From Zygophlyctis sp. KS116 (lineage: Eukaryota > Fungi > Chytridiomycota): a stretch of DNA of 32,000 nucleotides. The stretch is from contig BAAFSQ010000071.1 in NCBI GenBank assembly GCA_054661495.1, positions 11,370-43,369 on the forward strand, in the 5' to 3' direction. Shown here piece by piece: positions 3,116-32,000 of the stretch. Both the position numbers and the translations under genes were made by a program. The notes below the pieces were generated by a model. That model worked only from the letters and a program-made list of their open reading frames with translations, did no database searches and was not told the DNA's origin. Numbering within the stretch: the first letter of the stretch is position 1; every line of letters starts with the position of its first letter.

Positions 3116-4120
3116 ATATTCGCTTTGTAAGGTTTTTGTAACACATTTCTTAAGCTGAAGGCAGCAATTACTTGAAAGAATATTTTGTAGTGATCTTACT
3201 ATATCTGCTCTTTTATATGATTTCCGTGCATTGGATTGTAAGGCGCATTGCTTTGTTAAAAGTGGTAATAGAGATATCAATCCTTGCAGAAAATCTTCTT
3301 TATCTAAATCTGTACTGTCTATTTCACGTATTGTAACGTCCAATAATACAATTACATCATTTGTATAAAAGAATTCTTGATCTTTACAATCTTCCAAGAT
3401 TCTTCTTGTAAATTGTACCAATTGTCGCTTTAAGGAAAAATCCATCGATCTATTCATTAAAAATATAATATTTTCTGATAGAGTCTTTGTGGACTTTCTT
3501 CTTGATATCATTATAAGATTGATCTTGTTGCGCAAACTAGGCACAGAAGTGCATTTGCTATCGAATTGATCTTGGATATTTAACTTGGATTAATAAATAA
3601 TGATCTTTACTAGAAGCTTGAGTAGTTCATAACTGTAATCATCATTGTCACGCTCCAATTCAATTTCGTCCAATAGCTTGGTAAGGAATGAATCATCAAA
3701 TTCTTGAACTTCATTAATAGACAACTGCTGAACTTTAAGAATTTCATTCATGAGCAATGTATTCGTCCGCTTTCCTGAACGACTGCCGTCGAGGAAAAAT
3801 TGAATGCAGTCACTGATGCACAGATTTTTGAATAGATTGTTAAAATAACTGCGTCCGATTTTCAGATATAATAGAAAAATAATTTCTTTCAATGATGCAC
3901 TATTAATGCATTGAAGTTTTTCGACAAAATCATACATGGTGTCATCATCAAGTCCGGTTAAGAAATAATTGACTAACTTATCCATGTTAAAATCACTTTC
4001 CAGCAGAATGCTCAAGCTCCTTGCTGTGTCTTCATTTACTTTAGACAATGCATTCTCTTGGAATTTAATTGAACTAAAAATACCAACAATTGTGCTTTCT
4101 GAATCAGATAATAACTCCAT
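3104..4120 (-). CDS. LDB17: SPIN90/Ldb17/Dip1 (DUF2013) Arp2/3-activator family protein
   Basis: ORFs 3590-4120 and 3104-3544 join in frame through intron 3584-3610. The signature FFYTNDVIVLLDVTIRE and the preceding LSENIIFLMNR match the SPIN90/Ldb17 leucine-rich domain. Confidence 0.8.
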
Positions 4121-4641
4121 ACTAGACTTTTGTGTGGATTATAACCGAGACGTGTTATAACTGCCGACCAATTCATGATTTTCGTCCGATTCAATAAATA
4201 TTAGCACTGAAGAGGAGAAACTTGATTCTAAACATCTCTTCTCGGACACAGATTCTTATGCAGAGAAGACAATTTCTCAATATCAATTTGATCTGGGTTG
4301 GATGTATAGACTATCGATTTTTTAAAAAGATAAATTGCACATTATATTATTTTGTGTCGGTTAGAGATGCATCAAAAATCTTTACAACCAGGAGCAGCAA
4401 CTGAAAAACATTCTAGCAGAAAAAGGTAAGTAGATGTAATCTGTATAGGTAGGGATCGTAGATGCAGAGTTATTATCTGCAGCCGGGGAACCCATATACA
4501 TAACTTATCGGAGATTGCAATCAGACAATTATCATTAACTACATCTGTTTAGTTGAAGAGATGGTTGTCATTTGCGATGGCGTTACTCTTATTTTTAGTT
4601 TATAGATTCGTACCTCAAATACCAAGTTCAAAATTAAAATA

Positions 4642-5678
4642 CTATCCTATTTTCTGCTTTATGATTTTTGGTGTAGAGTCATTATTAAAATTCGGCGAGG
4701 AATACTTTAGAGTATTTAATATTCTACTTGAGAATTCTTGATCAAGACCAATATTAAATAGCAGATCAACTACTGATTTCATCTATTTTTAAAAAAAATA
4801 AAACTTACATCAATCTTGCTAGTTTTTGCAAAAACACCATTTGGATCAATGTGATCATATATAATACAACAAATTGTCATTATTTTACATTTACTATGGA
4901 TATTAATCTGATTCTGATCAGTGTTTTTGTGTTTAGATAAAATTAAGTAACAGGCTGCAGCAATCGTAAAGAATACTTGTAGAATGCTAGATGCTTTAAT
5001 TTCTACCTTTATATAAACTTTTTAAAAATTACTTTTTGAATTCCATTTTTTAAGTTTGAGATGATTTTGACAGTCATTGGATTCATTTGAGCGAGAAATA
5101 ATGAAATATAATTGGTTTCTTCGTCTGGTATAATGATTATATCTGGCTATTGTTTTTAGATTTCAATACTTACAGACTTGGATTCCTTGATTTTTGATAA
5201 TGATCTTCTATAATAACTGAAATCATTCTGCAATGCTGGATTAGATAATTTTAACCAATCAAATTCAGCATAAAATTCCAAGAGCGCTGAAAGTCTCTCT
5301 AGATCTAGTCTGTGAGATTCTATTTTTGATTGAAAATCGTCTGCTGATAATCTCTTGATAATTTGATAAAAGCTAGTGTCTAATTTTTTAAAATATTATA
5401 ATACCTATTTCACATGAAATTTGATAATATTTTCGAATGTCCAGAATACAAGGATTAAGCTTTTTACAAACCGCTGCATCATTTACGGAACTCGGATTAG
5501 AAATCGCTTCTTTGATATAAGTAGCGCAACCGGTGTAATTCCTTTGCGAGTTTAAAATTTCAACGAGGTGAGCTGGAATATCTATGGGTGGTAAAAGATC
5601 AATATCAATAGATTCTATCTCTTTCCATGATGTAGTATCGGTATAGATTGATTTGAAGAATGAGAAGATATTTCCCAT
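4642..5678 (-). CDS. FAM49: CYRI/FAM49 (DUF1394) Rac-interacting protein
   Basis: Starts MGN (myristoylation-type start). Motifs IKEAISNP, FDWLKLSNPALQNDFSYYRRSLSK, IIYDHIDPNGVFAKTSKID and ILNTLKYSSPNFNNDSTPK are spread across mini-intron-separated exons. Stop TAG at 4642-4644. Confidence 0.88.
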
Positions 5679-22971: not shown

Positions 22972-25346
22972 CTAATGATTATTTGTATCATTAAATGCTT
23001 GTGCCATTTCAATTATTGAATCTGGTATACCAGCAGACCTTGCAACAAGTAGTCCCCAACTAGATCCTGATCGTCCTTGAACAGCACGATACAAGTAGCA
23101 ATGCGAATCAGATGTTGAGAGAAACTCCATCATCCATTCCGAAACTAAAAGATCGGGAAGATTCAGATTTAATGAGTAAATTTCTAGATTTAAAGTGAAA
23201 AAAATACCGTGAAAATGTGTTGCTGCAATCACCTTTGGGCAGTTTGTTCCTCTTCCTACAAATGCTTCAATTATGGCACAAAATAATCCAATACCGTCAA
23301 AAGATGTAGTACCTTTGCCAAATTCATCAATTAGGATTAGAGATTTACTGGTTGAATTTTTAAGGGCTTTTTGGGTCTGATACTGATGGTTAACTTTTTT
23401 CTTCTTACCAAATCAAGCATGAATGAACTGGCTGAATCGGTCACTGATTCTCTGGTAGTAATTCTTGTCAAGATCTTGTCAGTGATTCCAATTACGCTTT
23501 CCTTTGCTGGAACAAAGGATCCAATATGTGCCATATAGACAATTAGAGCTATTTGTTTCAGATATACAGATTTTCCTGATGAATTCGGACCAGTTAAAAT
23601 AATAAGTCTTGGTCCTTCTTTATTCAAATGGATATCATTTGGAATAAACGTATCAGTTATTTGCTCCAAAAGTGGATGTCTGCCTTGCGTAATATTCAAA
23701 ATATTTTCATTAGTCATAGTGGGTCTGGTGTATCTATACTTTCTTGCGGCATTAGTCAATGAGACCAGGCAATCCAATTCTGCAAAGGCATTCGTCATTT
23801 CTGTTAATGCGTTTTTGTACTCTAATATTGTTTCACACAGACGATGCATAATTTCAATCTCTCTGTCTGAAATATTAGAATGAAGATCACCGAGATTTTC
23901 ATCCAGTTCGTACATTCTTTCATTCTTGTAGTAAGCATTTGAGTCTGTAGCAAACTAATTGTTAATGAAATTATTGAAATACCTGGAATAAAAGCAGCTC
24001 TATATTATAGTCATCAGTTTCAATCATGTAATCATTTAATGGAAGGCTTATCAGATACCCCAGCTGTGGGAAGTAGACGACATTTAGAGTTTTTCTCCAC
24101 TCGATAGGAACTTTTTGGATTTCATCTCTGGCGACTTGTGAAAGCAAATCATCTAAACCAGCATATGCTCTCTTCATCTCGTCAAGCTCTTCATCTACAT
24201 TCGCTTTAACTACAAATCGATCTTCAGATTCAGATTCATCGAAATCAACATACGTATTGATCATTGTTCCTACATCCCTCAAATCGTTAGGCGACAATTG
24301 TTCCAAAATACGTTTCAAGTAGTCAGATTGTAACTCGGATTCCAAGAGATGTGAACGCATTTTTAGACCATAATAAGAAAATTCCATCAAGACTTTCCAA
24401 TCGTTCGGTCTTGGTTTCTTTTTCATCATATCTAAAACTCTTGGAATATGTTTAATGTGTCTAAGCCCCAAAGATAATTGATCGCACAAATATTTTTGGT
24501 CTGGCAGTATCAGAAAGGAAATCGCATCATGTCTGATATTAATTACATCGATATCAATGCATGGATACATAAACCAAGATCTTAGCAGATTTTTCCCTAA
24601 TGGAGATTTGGTTGAATTTAAGAGTTTGAATAAAGAAAGGCCTTCCCTAACTTGAGAATTGTGCATGTTTGGACTATTCTTGAAAATATAATTAATTACT
24701 GCGCTTGATCTAGAAATATTTGCAATGACATTATCGTATCCTTATTTACATGCATAAAAGAATTTGAATTAAACTGTTCAATACCAGATACAATAATTGT
24801 GTCCGAAATTCTGCTATAGTTTCTTTCTAAAAATTGTAAAATTGCTCCAGCACACCCAACCATTTGACGATGATTTAGATTAACAATACTAGATAAATAA
24901 TGCATAAAATCAGACCCACGCATCCATTTTACCTGATCATCATTAATCTGCAAATGCATTAATCTCTTTTTACCATTATCATAAGAAAATTCAGCTGACG
25001 GCCTTGTTTCAATCTTAATTTGTTCTTTGAGCATTAAATTATAGACATACCTGCATTAATATTCCTGGTTAGATCCAATTCTGACCGTGCAGATACCAAT
25101 AATACAATTGGCTTAACCTGAAATACAACTACCAAATTACAATTAAACTTTACTTAAATCCAAAATCCCCAAACTTGTATTTTCGACTGTATCTTCCATT
25201 AAAAATAGAATATCTTGTGCTGGATCATAATACGCTGCGCCCAAAAGACTCTTTGACAATGAGACTGCAAGCACAATCGGTGGACTAGAAAACTCAAGAG
25301 ACTAAAAAGAATTTATTAAAAGAAAATATACTGATTCTTCTTCCAT
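22972..25346 (-). CDS. MSH5: MutS homolog 5 (meiotic crossover protein)
   Basis: SLQIF...REGLSLF; LNVVYFPQLGYLI; Walker A TGPNSSGKSVYLKQIALIVYMAHIGSFVPA; TRESV...SSFMLDL; LIDEFGKGT..DG; CPKVIAATHFH. These are MSH5-type motifs. Multi-exon, with first exon ATGGAAGAAGAATCA at 25332-25346. Confidence 0.92.
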
Positions 25347-25460
25347 TGATCTTACCTGTTTTTAATTTTAGGTTTTAGTCCGAATTACACAAGTATTTTA
25401 AGATCATTATCAGACGGATCATCCAACATATCCTTTAAATCATCTTTGCTAGGAATTTGA
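25325..25460. repeat. Left copy (136 nt) of a direct duplication flanking the nuclease cassette
   Basis: Nearly identical to 26561-26702. It differs by a 1-nt indel, one substitution and a 5-nt deletion. Confidence 0.95.
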
Positions 25461-26560
25461 GTTAGTTTATCATATCTACTTCGGCTTTTCTGAGTCCACC
25501 CATCTGCATTCCTAGAATACGATTTTCATGAAACCTCAGGGAGAGTCTTACGGTGCATTTGCTGCTAGATCTTACAATTCTCATATAATTAGCGATATGT
25601 CTACTAAATCACTTTCTGATCTACCCGCGCCATGCGTCTTCGCCCCCCATCTAATGGACGGAATACTCAAAATTCTCAACGATCTCACTGAAGAAGAAAC
25701 GAGCCAGCTCTCAGACAAGCAAAAGAAAGCAGTGAAAGCTCTCATTAGCTCCAAACCTTGCGTTCCATTCCACAAGGCTACTCTCAACGACTGTGTAAGA
25801 CCCGATGGTCTGGCTTTGAACATTGACTGCATAAGAGTAAAAGCTCCAACTCTTCATATTCCTGTGGATTTTGCTGCTCCTATTGCGAGTGCACACTTGT
25901 GTGAAACTTTGGCAAATATTGATAAAGTTTGGGTACTGGACAATGAAAAGTCTTGTAGAATTGTCATTGATGTAATTCTTACTGAAGTTCTATTGGATGA
26001 AACTAACCATGAGCTTATGGGATTTTGTGAAGTAAAGAATGATTGGGAAGGAACTGGATTCGGCTATACTGGTGATGTGGACTATATGTTTGGGTCCTCT
26101 AAAACCAAATCTGTTGATACCATGGACTCTTTTCTTTTGATTGTGCAAGCAAAATGTGAATGGCCAGCCAAGTCAGTCGCCCAAACTCTTGTCGAAGCTG
26201 GTTGCTTGCTTAAGAAACGTCTGGCTGCTGGAAAAAACACCCCTGTGTTTGCCATTTTAACCAATGGGACAGACTTTCGCTTCTTTGCCATTGACACTGA
26301 TGGTGTTGTGTATGCTTCTGATAAAGAAGTCCTTAAACTTGGAGAAGACGGAACTTACAAGTCAAGCTCTTCTTTGTCTGAAATTCTTCGTTGGTTCACT
26401 TGGTTTATGACTGCTATCATATCTGTCTCTCCCAGTAACGTAGATCTGACTAATGATTCCCTTACTAAACTCAGAAGCTGCTTTGGTCCAAATAATACAA
26501 CTTCAAGCAAAAAATTAAAGATTCAAAAGTAGTATTTCATATCAACATATTACTTACTTG
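25461..26560 (+). mobile_element. 1100-nt insertion carrying a restriction-endonuclease-fold ORF, flanked by a long direct duplication of host sequence
   Basis: Bounded exactly by the two repeat copies, intronless, and visibly more C/G-rich than the flanks. No terminal inverted repeats or poly(A) tail were seen. Confidence 0.6.
25528..26532 (+). CDS. PD-(D/E)xK restriction-endonuclease-fold protein, Crinkler (CR-REase)/HsdR_N-like
   Basis: NEKSCRIVIDVIL (first helix), GDVDY, LLIVQAK (E replaced by Q), AQTLVEA, PVFAILTNGTDFRFF, and a C-terminal basic NLS-like SKKLKIQK. Confidence 0.7.
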   Translation: MKPQGESYGAFAARSYNSHIISDMSTKSLSDLPAPCVFAPHLMDGILKILNDLTEEETSQLSDKQKKAVKALISSKPCVPFHKATLNDCVRPDGLALNIDCIRVKAPTLHIPVDFAAPIASAHLCETLANIDKVWVLDNEKSCRIVIDVILTEVLLDETNHELMGFCEVKNDWEGTGFGYTGDVDYMFGSSKTKSVDTMDSFLLIVQAKCEWPAKSVAQTLVEAGCLLKKRLAAGKNTPVFAILTNGTDFRFFAIDTDGVVYASDKEVLKLGEDGTYKSSSSLSEILRWFTWFMTAIISVSPSNVDLTNDSLTKLRSCFGPNNTTSSKKLKIQK

Positions 26561-26702
26561 AATATACTGATTCTTCTTCCATTGATCTTTACCTGTTTTT
26601 AATTTTAGGCTTTAGTCCGAATTACACAAGTATTTTAAGACTCTTTCATTATCAGACGGATCATCCAACATATCCTTTAAATCATCTTTGCTAGGAATTT
26701 GA
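26561..26702. repeat. Right copy (142 nt) of the direct duplication
   Basis: Contains the intact 3' end of the cupin gene plus an orphan copy of the MSH5 start exon. Confidence 0.95.
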
Positions 26703-27118
26703 TAATCTTGAACATCAAATCCAGGCGACACTGTACATCCCAATAATGCATAATCTCCCTGATCACTAGAATCAATAAACGCACCAAACCAAATCCCACC
26801 AGGCACCACTGCCTGAATTACTTGATTGTCCTTGATATCATGTCCTAATTTAGTTATTTTAAGTTTATTATTCTCTATAGTAACCAGGCTTACTGGTGCA
26901 TTTCCAGAATAGTAGTGCCACATTTCATCTGATTTGATACGATGCAATCTAGATTTTTGACCAAACGATAATAGATAAAGGATAGACGTAGAGTAATTCT
27001 TTTTATCTGAACCAATAGTAAATGATCCTGTATTGCGATAAGTCTCTCTATAGTATCCTCCCTCAAAGTGTGGGGACAGATTATAGTATTTGATCAATTG
27101 GCTGACGGTTGGATTCAT
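26612..27118 (-). CDS. DUF985/cupin_5 family protein
   Basis: LSPHFEGGYYRET, STSILYLL, SRLHRIKSDEMWHYYSG, QAVVPGGIWFGA, ALLGCTVSPGFD. ATG 27118 is preferred over 27184, which would overlap APC11. Confidence 0.9.
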   Translation of the reverse strand: MNPTVSQLIKYYNLSPHFEGGYYRETYRNTGSFTIGSDKKNYSTSILYLLSFGQKSRLHRIKSDEMWHYYSGNAPVSLVTIENNKLKITKLGHDIKDNQVIQAVVPGGIWFGAFIDSSDQGDYALLGCTVSPGFDVQDYQIPSKDDLKDMLDDPSDNERVLKYLCNSD

Positions 27119-27145
27119 TGCGTAGGGCGGTGGGTAGAATTCATC

Positions 27146-27464
27146 ATGAAAATCTCGGTTAAAAGTATGTTGCTGTTTATTCATTTTTAGAATGGGAGGC
27201 GGTTGGATTTTGGAAATGGAATATCGCTAATAATGAATCTGTTTGTGGAATTTGTAGAAATGCGTTTGAAGCAACTTGTCCAGGATGTAAAACGCCAGGG
27301 GATGAATGTCCATTAAGTATTTTTTACTATTAAATTGTACAGTGTGGGGTGAATGTAGTCATGTTTTTCATCTACATTGTATACTAAAATGGATTTCTTC
27401 TAGTTCATCAAAAGGAACATGTCCGATGGATAGACTAGAATGGAAAACTGCAACATCAATTTGA
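27146..27464 (+). CDS. APC11: Anaphase-promoting complex RING-H2 subunit 11 (not in the ORF track)
   Basis: Three exons separated by two mini-introns give MKISVKKWEAVGFWKWNIANNESVCGICRNAFEATCPGCKTPGDECPLMWGECSHVFHLHCILKWISSSSSKGTCPMDRLEWKTATSI*. Confidence 0.93.
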
Positions 27465-31626: not shown

Positions 31627-32000
31627 TCATATACCGGCTTCTTTAAATGACCAATCACTTCTAAACTTTTCCTTCAAGATTGTTTCAGTCCAATCCCACA
31701 TTTTTTTAGCTTTAGTCATGTCACAACCATTTTTATTAGGTGATGCTAGAGCACAGTAAGGAACAAAATATTTGCCCTTGATCTTATCCTTTTCAATTTG
31801 TGATGCTGCTGCAACATATATCTGAGTCAATGCTCCATATTTGGAATCTACGCTCAACTTTCCAATCATCCAACTTGTAAACCCTCTCTCAGCCATATTT
31901 CGAGTCAATTCTGTTTTGACGATAGTAGTATAGATAGAGCACCGAATGATACCATTTTTCATACGGAACTTTTTTAGCTTCTCATCAATAGACAAATGGT
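31627..32000 (-). CDS. C-terminal part of a short-chain dehydrogenase/reductase (retinol dehydrogenase/WWOX-like), 5'-partial
   Basis: VKTELTRN...GALTQIYVAA...KGKYFVPY...AKKMWDWTE is the typical C-terminus of this SDR subfamily. Confidence 0.75.
   Translation of the reverse strand, partial: HLSIDEKLKKFRMKNGIIRCSIYTTIVKTELTRNMAERGFTSWMIGKLSVDSKYGALTQIYVAAASQIEKDKIKGKYFVPYCALASPNKNGCDMTKAKKMWDWTETILKEKFRSDWSFKEAGI

Follow-up and report, generated by a model that had tools for sequence, protein, structure and literature searches.

A nuclease gene within a 142-nt target duplication of a chytrid genome, and the terminus that its family shares with unrelated cassettes

Between a cupin gene and an MSH5-type gene of the chytrid Zygophlyctis sp. 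KS116, a nuclease segment has been inserted, and a single host segment of 142 nt is now found on both sides of it. The locus lies in a 32,000-nt stretch of contig BAAFSQ010000071.1 (the window, part of contig C71 in what follows), in an assembly of 12.7 Mb divided into 1175 contigs (G000). Relatives of this gene form a family found across zoosporic fungi, and the terminus that bounds the canonical copies of this family also bounds unrelated cargo. This terminus, some 36 nt long, is the novel feature reported here. On balance we favour the view that we are dealing with a family of mobile cassettes, copied into widely staggered breaks, of which the window would hold an old member, deprived of the terminus and joined to its target via microhomology.

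Each copy of the host segment comprises the final 91 nt of the coding sequence of the cupin gene (Cupin_5), a 29-nt spacer and the initial 22 nt of the MSH5-type coding sequence (Table 1). The two copies differ by one substitution, one 1-nt indel and one 5-nt indel (CTCTT). A comparison of the whole 32-kb window with itself displays no other such repeat, except for two tandem paralogous genes. A preliminary description of the window, made from its sequence, had placed exactly 1100 nt between the copies and, in this interval, one intronless open reading frame (ORF) of distinct composition; both statements hold, the GC content being 0.38-0.46 within the ORF and 0.30-0.37 in the flanks. Neither terminal inverted repeat (TIR), long terminal repeat, reverse transcriptase (RT) nor transposase is present in the insert, as had been stated, and no inverted repeat is found at its bounds. 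With no more than 29 nt between the stop of cupin and the start of MSH5, any plain insertion at this place would break one gene or the other. The duplication, far beyond ordinary length, leaves both neighbours intact, again as proposed. The MSH5-type gene codes for MutS_III/IV domains, and its first exon is called MutS5_N in the gene calls of relatives.

Table 1. Positions of the features discussed in the text, and flanking repeats at six loci of the nuclease family.
Feature	Locus	Position	Strand	Remarks
Host MutS-family (MSH5-type) gene, 5' exons	window	23971..25346	-	begins in left repeat copy
MSH5-side target-duplication copy	window	25325..25460		136 nt; MSH5 start codon 25346-25344 (-) and 114 nt of upstream region
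Insert, 5' leader	window	25461..25653	+	resembles no other family copy
Insert, intronless ORF	window	25654..26532	+	292 aa from M43; mechanical ORF from 25528; predicted stand-alone PD-(D/E)xK (restriction-endonuclease-fold) protein
Insert, first 28 nt of family 3' untranslated region	window	26533..26560	+	ends at AATATA microhomology with target
Cupin-side target-duplication copy	window	26561..26702		142 nt, intact; gives cupin its last 30 codons and stop
Host Cupin_5 (DUF985) gene	window	26612..27184	-	intact
29-nt terminus core, other element	window	31925-31953	-	C71 ends 47 nt on; host flank T-AT-CG-T
29-nt terminus core	L002	1335-1363	-
Nuclease copy with flanking repeat	window, C71 (G000)			repeat 136 / 142 nt; insert 1100 nt
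Nuclease copy with flanking repeat	L002, C7 (G000)			repeat 543 nt, 100% identical; insert 1400 nt
Nuclease copy with flanking repeat	L003, C199 (G000)			repeat 356-361 nt at 91.5%, to about 390 nt with indels; insert 1087 nt
Nuclease copy	L004, C15 (G000)			no flanking repeat
Nuclease copy with flanking repeat	L015 (metagenome)			repeat 135 nt, 97.8%; insert 1175 nt
Nuclease copy with flanking repeat	L020 (metagenome)			repeat 95 nt, 98.9%; insert 1534 nt
Retropepsin-like ORF family (weak gag-asp_proteas matches)	L004	805-1326	+	terminus-bounded cargo
Retropepsin-like ORF family	L025	878-1429		terminus-bounded cargo
Retropepsin-like ORF family	L030	342-935		terminus-bounded cargo
GIY-YIG-like ORF, about 90 aa	L016	3639-3911	-	divergent, upstream of nuclease gene
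GIY-YIG-like ORF	L020	upstream of 4001		divergent, upstream of nuclease gene

Two orthologous loci, retrieved via a search with the cupin protein, tell us what this site looks like elsewhere. The first, a Logan contig (L092), is an empty site: its genes follow one another in the order NIF, GMPPB, RING, cupin, then, after about 30 nt, MSH5, with a single copy of the segment and no nuclease gene between the last two. Past the MSH5 start its sequence continues as in the MSH5-side copy of the window. This single copy establishes the 142-nt repeat as a true target duplication. The organism is a rather distant relative (the cupin is 72% identical, with nucleotide identity of about 75%). The second locus, scaffold_227 of ENA GROS21 (L091), is 95-97% identical to the window and filled; both of its repeat copies have the full 142 nt, and they are 97.9% identical to each other. 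The insertion is also present in runs X6 and X7, which come from other studies and other lakes and represent strains diverging by 2-4%. We also compared the contigs (not the raw reads) of four public freshwater runs over window positions 24800-27300: none of them skips the insert, so that no empty allele is seen in close strains. The empty site expected in related isolates thus exists in the more distant relative, and not among the contigs of close strains. The insertion is younger than the separation from the L092 lineage, and older than the divergence of the sampled lake strains.

A misjoined repeat in the assembly might in principle create both duplication and insert; we give this explanation a next to negligible chance. 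Short-read unitigs do break within the 57-nt identical core of the repeat, which unitigs at k=31 are unable to bridge, but L091, which comes from another sample, was independently assembled in the same order. Furthermore, distinguishing variants tie each repeat copy to its own flank, and the depths of insert and flank are similar. Both junctions, which the preliminary description had singled out for confirmation, are recovered in independent unitigs or contigs as well as in L091: X2 unitigs cover the two of them (record 2 spans 25431-26055, record 6 spans 26314-26675), and record 19 of X6 crosses the left one (25319-25815).

The inserted nuclease copy has been decaying ever since its arrival. 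In L091 the ortholog of the insert (3484-4919) is a pseudogene, with a frameshift and a 52-nt deletion that takes out the strand bearing the (E/Q)xK motif. Its leader is 417 nt longer than that of the window; the additional stretch comprises an antisense fragment of a leucine-rich repeat (LRR) gene, which resembles an LRR gene family of the assembly studied here (L054:1038-1134), and an N-terminal extension which is basic and in frame. About 400 nt of this leader are gone from the window strain, the segment originally inserted being about 1.5 kb long; what is left (25461-25653) has no match among the other sequences compared. The redundant cupin 3' fragment of the left repeat copy has suffered too: the window strain has 1-nt and 5-nt deletions of its own there, the 5-nt one frameshifting, as had been noticed before. 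The left copy of X6 and X7 keeps the T and the CTCTT that are absent from the window strain, and both copies of L091 are of full length; the frameshifting deletion arose later, in the window strain alone. The mobilisation had been described as recent, a view contradicted by a decaying copy that is common to strains 2-4% divergent. At the very least, the locus offers a clean natural target duplication of 142 nt, with its empty, filled and decayed states in wild populations.

The product of the inserted gene has no family in Pfam or NCBIfam. Its start is probably M43 (window 25654), since in the family alignment the proteins begin with MNxLFxKPLNxLTEEEK. A word-index search identifies 126 relatives at 45-80% identity; those with a name are all from zoosporic fungi (Globomyces, Boothiomyces, Batrachochytrium, Obelidium, Kappamyces, Synchytrium, Rozella, Amoeboaphelidium), one liverwort assembly excepted, and the remainder are found in metagenomes. 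A profile search of 1.8 billion representatives yields 322 members, nearly all of which are at most 420 aa long and matched over their full length, and this makes a stand-alone family of them rather than the C-terminal domain of Crinkler proteins. The AlphaFold2 model of the ORF (pLDDT 80) matches the nuclease domain of BpuSI (VIA-align Z 11.8, 159 aligned residues, root-mean-square deviation 3.5), DrdV (Z 10.9) and HsdR (Z 8.4); the matches also include NucC and Cas4, and Foldseek agrees on a restriction endonuclease (REase) fold. Mitoribosomal chains, which we take to be REase-like proteins, are matched at Z 15-16. Judging from this model, the protein is predicted to possess the core alpha/beta REase fold, in agreement with what its motifs had led the preliminary description to propose. 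Residue D185 is invariant in the family; the consensus VVEAK has an E column which varies between E, Q, G and V, and the window copy, with IVQAK, carries a Q. The window ORF also carries the GDVDY strand, and the C-terminal KKLKIQK tail is conserved. In the family, the N-terminus starts about 45 aa ahead of the fold, and dN/dS (the ratio of non-synonymous to synonymous divergence) among copies is 0.2-0.4. In all four lake metagenomes, the contig depth over the conserved ORF core (window 25976-26479) exceeds that of the flanks by a factor of tens to hundreds, which indicates that the nuclease family is abundant across organisms in these lakes.

REase domains are known in Crinkler (CR) effectors (Zhang et al., 2016, as related in PMC5289972), and the gene had been described as a Crinkler-type effector. 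The REase-fold nuclease, its basic tail of nuclear type and its chytrid host make for a likeness. Yet the likeness ends there, as neither the family nor the window copy has the header of these effectors: no N-terminal ubiquitin-like (Ubl) domain of the LFLAK type is found in the ORF, nor any Pfam match, and the family has neither an NTPase or kinase partner domain nor a delivery signal. With solo proteins of about 300 aa, and with 322 representatives that are almost all short and stand-alone, the assignment finds no support.

Long flanking duplications are not restricted to the window. Its assembly contains three close paralogs of the nuclease gene and a distant one, which resemble one another at the DNA level in the ORF only, and taking all sources together, repeats of 95-543 nt flank the gene at five of twelve independent family loci (window, L002, L003, L015 and L020; Table 1). 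None is found around some 70 other genes called in the same loci. The Rozella, Globomyces and Amoeboaphelidium copies and three other loci have no long repeat that we could find. The preliminary description had anticipated that paralogs would share ends and have long flanking repeats of their own. The repeats are there, on C7 (543 nt), on C199 (about 360-390 nt) and at two loci of other organisms (135 and 95 nt), whereas the window copy has no ends in common with its paralogs. In all five repeat-bearing loci the duplicated segment is a short gap between close genes, or gene ends. Such gap-covering duplications could reflect the survival of those insertions that spare their neighbours; alternatively, they could reflect the location of the nicks. 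Unequal crossing-over between long flanking repeats would yield an arrangement such as that of Batrachochytrium dendrobatidis (Bd) JEL423 (L011, DS022304.1:1651360-1660650), where the REase unit, with the same terminus as elsewhere, is repeated in tandem, head to tail, every 1.99 kb or so.

It is the region downstream of the gene that gives the family its most telling feature. Past the stop codon, a 3' untranslated region (UTR) is common to L002, Bd (L011), Globomyces (L013), L015, L016 and L020, and in part to L003, Rozella (L012) and L021. In full copies it is 170-230 nt long and, in the six first loci, ends in one and the same stretch of about 36 nt, beyond which the sequences become unrelated at once. 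This terminus is kept in the assembly studied here, in Bd JEL423, in Globomyces and in metagenomes; at L002 and L015 the downstream repeat copy begins directly after it. The window copy possesses neither the full UTR nor its terminus: it is cut 28 nt past the stop, at six nucleotides (AATATA) common to the family UTR and to the target. A 29-nt core of the terminus is present at least 35 times in the assembly (a control pattern is absent) and on 33 metagenome contigs. Several of its copies lie 47 nt from contig ends, so that the assembly is interrupted by this repeat. At the tip of the terminus TAC units vary in number, some copies having extra ones. Copies may also be in tandem (L066, L062), and in L071 a terminus stands directly against a 5'-truncated REase unit. 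No terminus was found in the viral contigs searched, nor in the searchable literature; Rfam recognizes neither a ribozyme nor an RNA of any other family within the UTRs, and RNA or DNA folding of UTR and terminus does no better than shuffled sequences, with no hairpin (z 0.0-0.4).

The host sequence adjacent to the terminus is not random. Among 56 unique outer flanks, the first position is T in all 56 and the sixth in 35; positions 4 and 5 read CG in 21 (the background is 2.2%), and TG or CA in 15 more, while positions 2 and 3 vary, even inside one cargo family. The flank thus prefers T-NN-CG-T. The frequent replacement of CG by TG or CA hints at a sequence-selective nick and at CpG decay. The window itself ends close to a terminus that belongs to another element, abutting an ORF fragment that resembles short-chain dehydrogenases (Table 1). 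In another locus (L063, oriented), an 83-nt direct repeat (2026-2108) starts exactly at the end of the terminus and recurs 1.5 kb further on (3525-3602); it encloses a segment with an ankyrin-like ORF, and may correspond to a second insertion beside the first.

On its inner side, the terminus is associated with several unrelated families of cargo, with ORFs in either orientation to it: HNH_2 proteins, P-loop NTPases, a coiled-coil protein, a retropepsin-like protein, and proteins with N-termini similar to the Crinkler Ubl header (this being judged by eye, with no Pfam match). Most cassettes were seen at one end only, and the loci with other cargo consist of 1.5 kb of cassette interior, which is too short to reveal surrounding repeats. 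HNH and Crinkler-type genes, both in the assembly and in metagenomes, are bounded by the terminus of the REase family, and this sharing argues for one mobile system rather than for unrelated accidents of repair. One retropepsin-like ORF stands tail-to-tail with the REase paralog of C15. The GIY-YIG-like ORF located upstream of the REase gene in two metagenome loci matches PDB 1ywl (E 2e-4) and, weakly, a model of group I intron endonuclease; L002 (2539-2781) retains only a C-terminal remnant of it. A candidate for a conserved 5' end, ATCAACTTGGCACC..., was rejected: it is the reverse complement of the C-terminus of the neighbouring GIY-YIG-like ORF, and is present once in the genome.

If one end is fixed, the far end of the cassettes is variable. 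L015 starts 45 nt ahead of the ATG, after 16 nt of filler, and is 5' truncated. L003 is cut at its 3' side, inside the UTR, at a GCGCC microhomology. In L020 an inverted copy of host DNA, 90 nt long and 100% identical to its source 465 nt away, is placed between terminus and repeat. Junctions of this kind, where both ends of the window, L003, L015 and L020 inserts show microhomology, filler and truncations, might be taken to mean that no dedicated element is involved: host repair of staggered breaks or collapsed forks would have taken in whatever DNA was at hand, or proceeded by template switching, and we would see insertions of nuclease and effector genes simply as these are tolerated. The mosaic leader, with its piece of an LRR gene, would fit, and Arabidopsis provides a precedent in transposed genes whose flanking repeats derive from the target (PMC2869330). 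We nevertheless hold this explanation to be rather unlikely, for it leaves unexplained that at least six independent insertions of the family, in different organisms, reproduce a terminus of about 36 nt, that the flank prefers T-NN-CG-T, and that three of four paralogs have long repeats when none of about 70 neighbouring genes does.

The combination of a fixed end, a flank consensus, a series of truncations, variable tips and variable duplications resembles target-primed copy-in, and it is along these lines that we would account for the cassettes. Integration would be of the copy-in, target-primed type, starting from a linear copy of the cassette, either cDNA or DNA. One end of this copy would be joined or primed at a nick, through the fixed terminus in canonical cases and through an internal microhomology in the window copy. 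A break of the second strand, 95-543 nt off, would then leave two long single-stranded flaps, whose fill-in would generate the giant duplication, while filler DNA and 5' truncations would form at the far junction. The genomes being compact, those insertions would survive that duplicate a short intergenic region in full and thereby keep both neighbours working. As for the enzyme, candidates would be an RT acting in trans, a repair polymerase, or one of the cargo nucleases used as a nickase. Generation of duplications by fill-in between nicks on opposite strands is an established mechanism (PMC5730883), and LINE-1, when the second nick of a target-primed insertion is a distal one, is known to leave duplications above 100 bp and 'tailless' inserts (PMC5223499). 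Of what would be expected of retrocopies made by target-primed reverse transcription, copies of the family are without introns and end at a 3' terminus that is fixed but for its TAC units; truncation at the 5' side and target-site duplications are present too. The window copy, on the other hand, lacks the tail, and the orientation of the cargo is mixed.

Several facts weigh against this account. No poly(A) is found, and cargo in either orientation to the terminus would be odd for copies derived from mRNA. At least 151 RT (RVT_1) and 15 Helitron-like matches are present in the assembly, none of them inside a terminus-bounded unit, a negative that its fragmentation makes weak. The filler of L020 is located at the terminus-side junction, which is unusual for target priming. 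Seven of the twelve family loci have no long repeat, and the 543-nt repeat of L002, 100% identical, is known from the assembly alone. Finally, the window copy has neither terminus nor T-NN-CG-T, and family membership is all that ties it to the canonical mechanism.

The nature of the cargo suggests another scenario, in which the REase, or the product of the neighbouring GIY-YIG or HNH gene, would drive the insertion of its own gene through nicks made at T-NN-CG-T in the two strands, at a distance from each other. The short flank consensus does imply a sequence-selective cut, and the cargo is rich in nucleases (REase, HNH_2, and the GIY-YIG-like ORF that precedes the REase gene divergently in L016 and L020). 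We deem this improbable all the same: NTPase, retropepsin-like and coiled-coil proteins also travel as cargo, and the family does not conserve the E of (D/E)xK, which is Q in the window copy and deleted in L091. An equally small chance is granted to one-ended rolling-circle transposition, of the Helitron or IS91 type, where the fixed terminus would be the origin end and the variable end a missed termination. This would account for one constant and one variable end, for the mixed orientation of the cargo, for the invariant flanking base and for the tandem units (Bd L011, L062, L066), and genes for a Helitron Rep-helicase are indeed present in the assembly. But the end reads CTAC-T, and there is no 5'-TC, 3'-CTRR or subterminal hairpin; Helitrons make no target duplication, while copies of the family have them; and no copy encoding Rep was found with the terminus in the assembly. 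The same absence of TC/CTRR and hairpin, together with the duplications, makes a canonical Helitron a poor fit. Cut-and-paste TIR transposons are excluded by the lack of TIR and by duplications of varying length (95, 135, 142, about 360-390 and 543 nt). Free-standing homing endonuclease genes do not match the family either, as every copy is at a different locus, five of them with long duplications.

To return to the favoured account, copy-in of a mobile cassette, LINE-1 insertions with a distal second nick are a close parallel (PMC5223499): in both, copy-in goes with a duplication above 100 bp, 5' truncations and 'tailless' inserts that are joined with no normal 3' tail, and the first nick favours a short sequence. 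Unlike LINE-1, the cassettes have neither poly(A) nor an RT or partner long interspersed element (LINE) of the same tail that we could find, their cargo may be antisense to the fixed end, and long duplications, rare in LINE-1, are common among them. In the transposition of genes in Arabidopsis (PMC2869330), likewise, genes that are not transposons have moved and are flanked by host repeats that are single-copy in a relative; in contrast with the cassettes, neither this case nor that of paired nicks (PMC5730883) involves a conserved terminus, a flank consensus or recurrence of a family across species. Homing endonuclease genes and the IS91-ISCR group share with the cassettes the location of small nuclease genes in gaps between conserved genes, and one fixed end with a short adjacent flank motif, the other end being variable. 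They differ in that homing uses one site and makes no duplication, and that IS91 and Helitrons make no duplication and need a Rep gene.

The distribution of the family points to horizontal spread. Synonymous divergence (dS) between the Rozella copy and those of lake chytrids is 0.65-0.99, which is similar to the 0.43-0.58 between paralogs within the Zygophlyctis assembly. Parts of the non-coding UTR can be aligned between Rozella and chytrids, and the terminus is conserved in Bd, Globomyces and lake chytrids. Such low dS, alignable UTR and conserved terminus are hard to reconcile with vertical descent. The protein tree is a poorly resolved mosaic in which the paralogs of the assembly are scattered, and is too weak to prove transfer.

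A broader proposal, which we put forward tentatively and regard as possible rather than probable, is that a class of mobile cassettes so far undescribed exists in zoosporic fungi (in chytrids and, as regards the REase family, in Rozella), with a fixed end of about 36 nt, a preference for T-NN-CG-T, a free other end and giant, variable duplications. Such cassettes would carry genes for nucleases and Crinkler-type toxins to new places, inside a species as well as from one species to another, and leave compact genomes undisturbed. Were this system real, it would account for the multiplication of Crinkler-type and nuclease genes, and for their passage between species, in chytrids, organisms which include the amphibian pathogen Batrachochytrium. 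It would also represent a mode of insertion in which an intergenic region is duplicated in full, so that neither neighbour is harmed even where genes are densely packed. Terminus and flank consensus can both be searched for, and predict a sequence-selective nick.

The Rozella copy deserves a last remark. In Rozella allomycis (KE560848.1) the nuclease gene adjoins a fragment of a Copia-type gag/pol, and about 135 nt on its 5' side resemble the interior of the gene (3772-3906 against 4353-4481, 85%).

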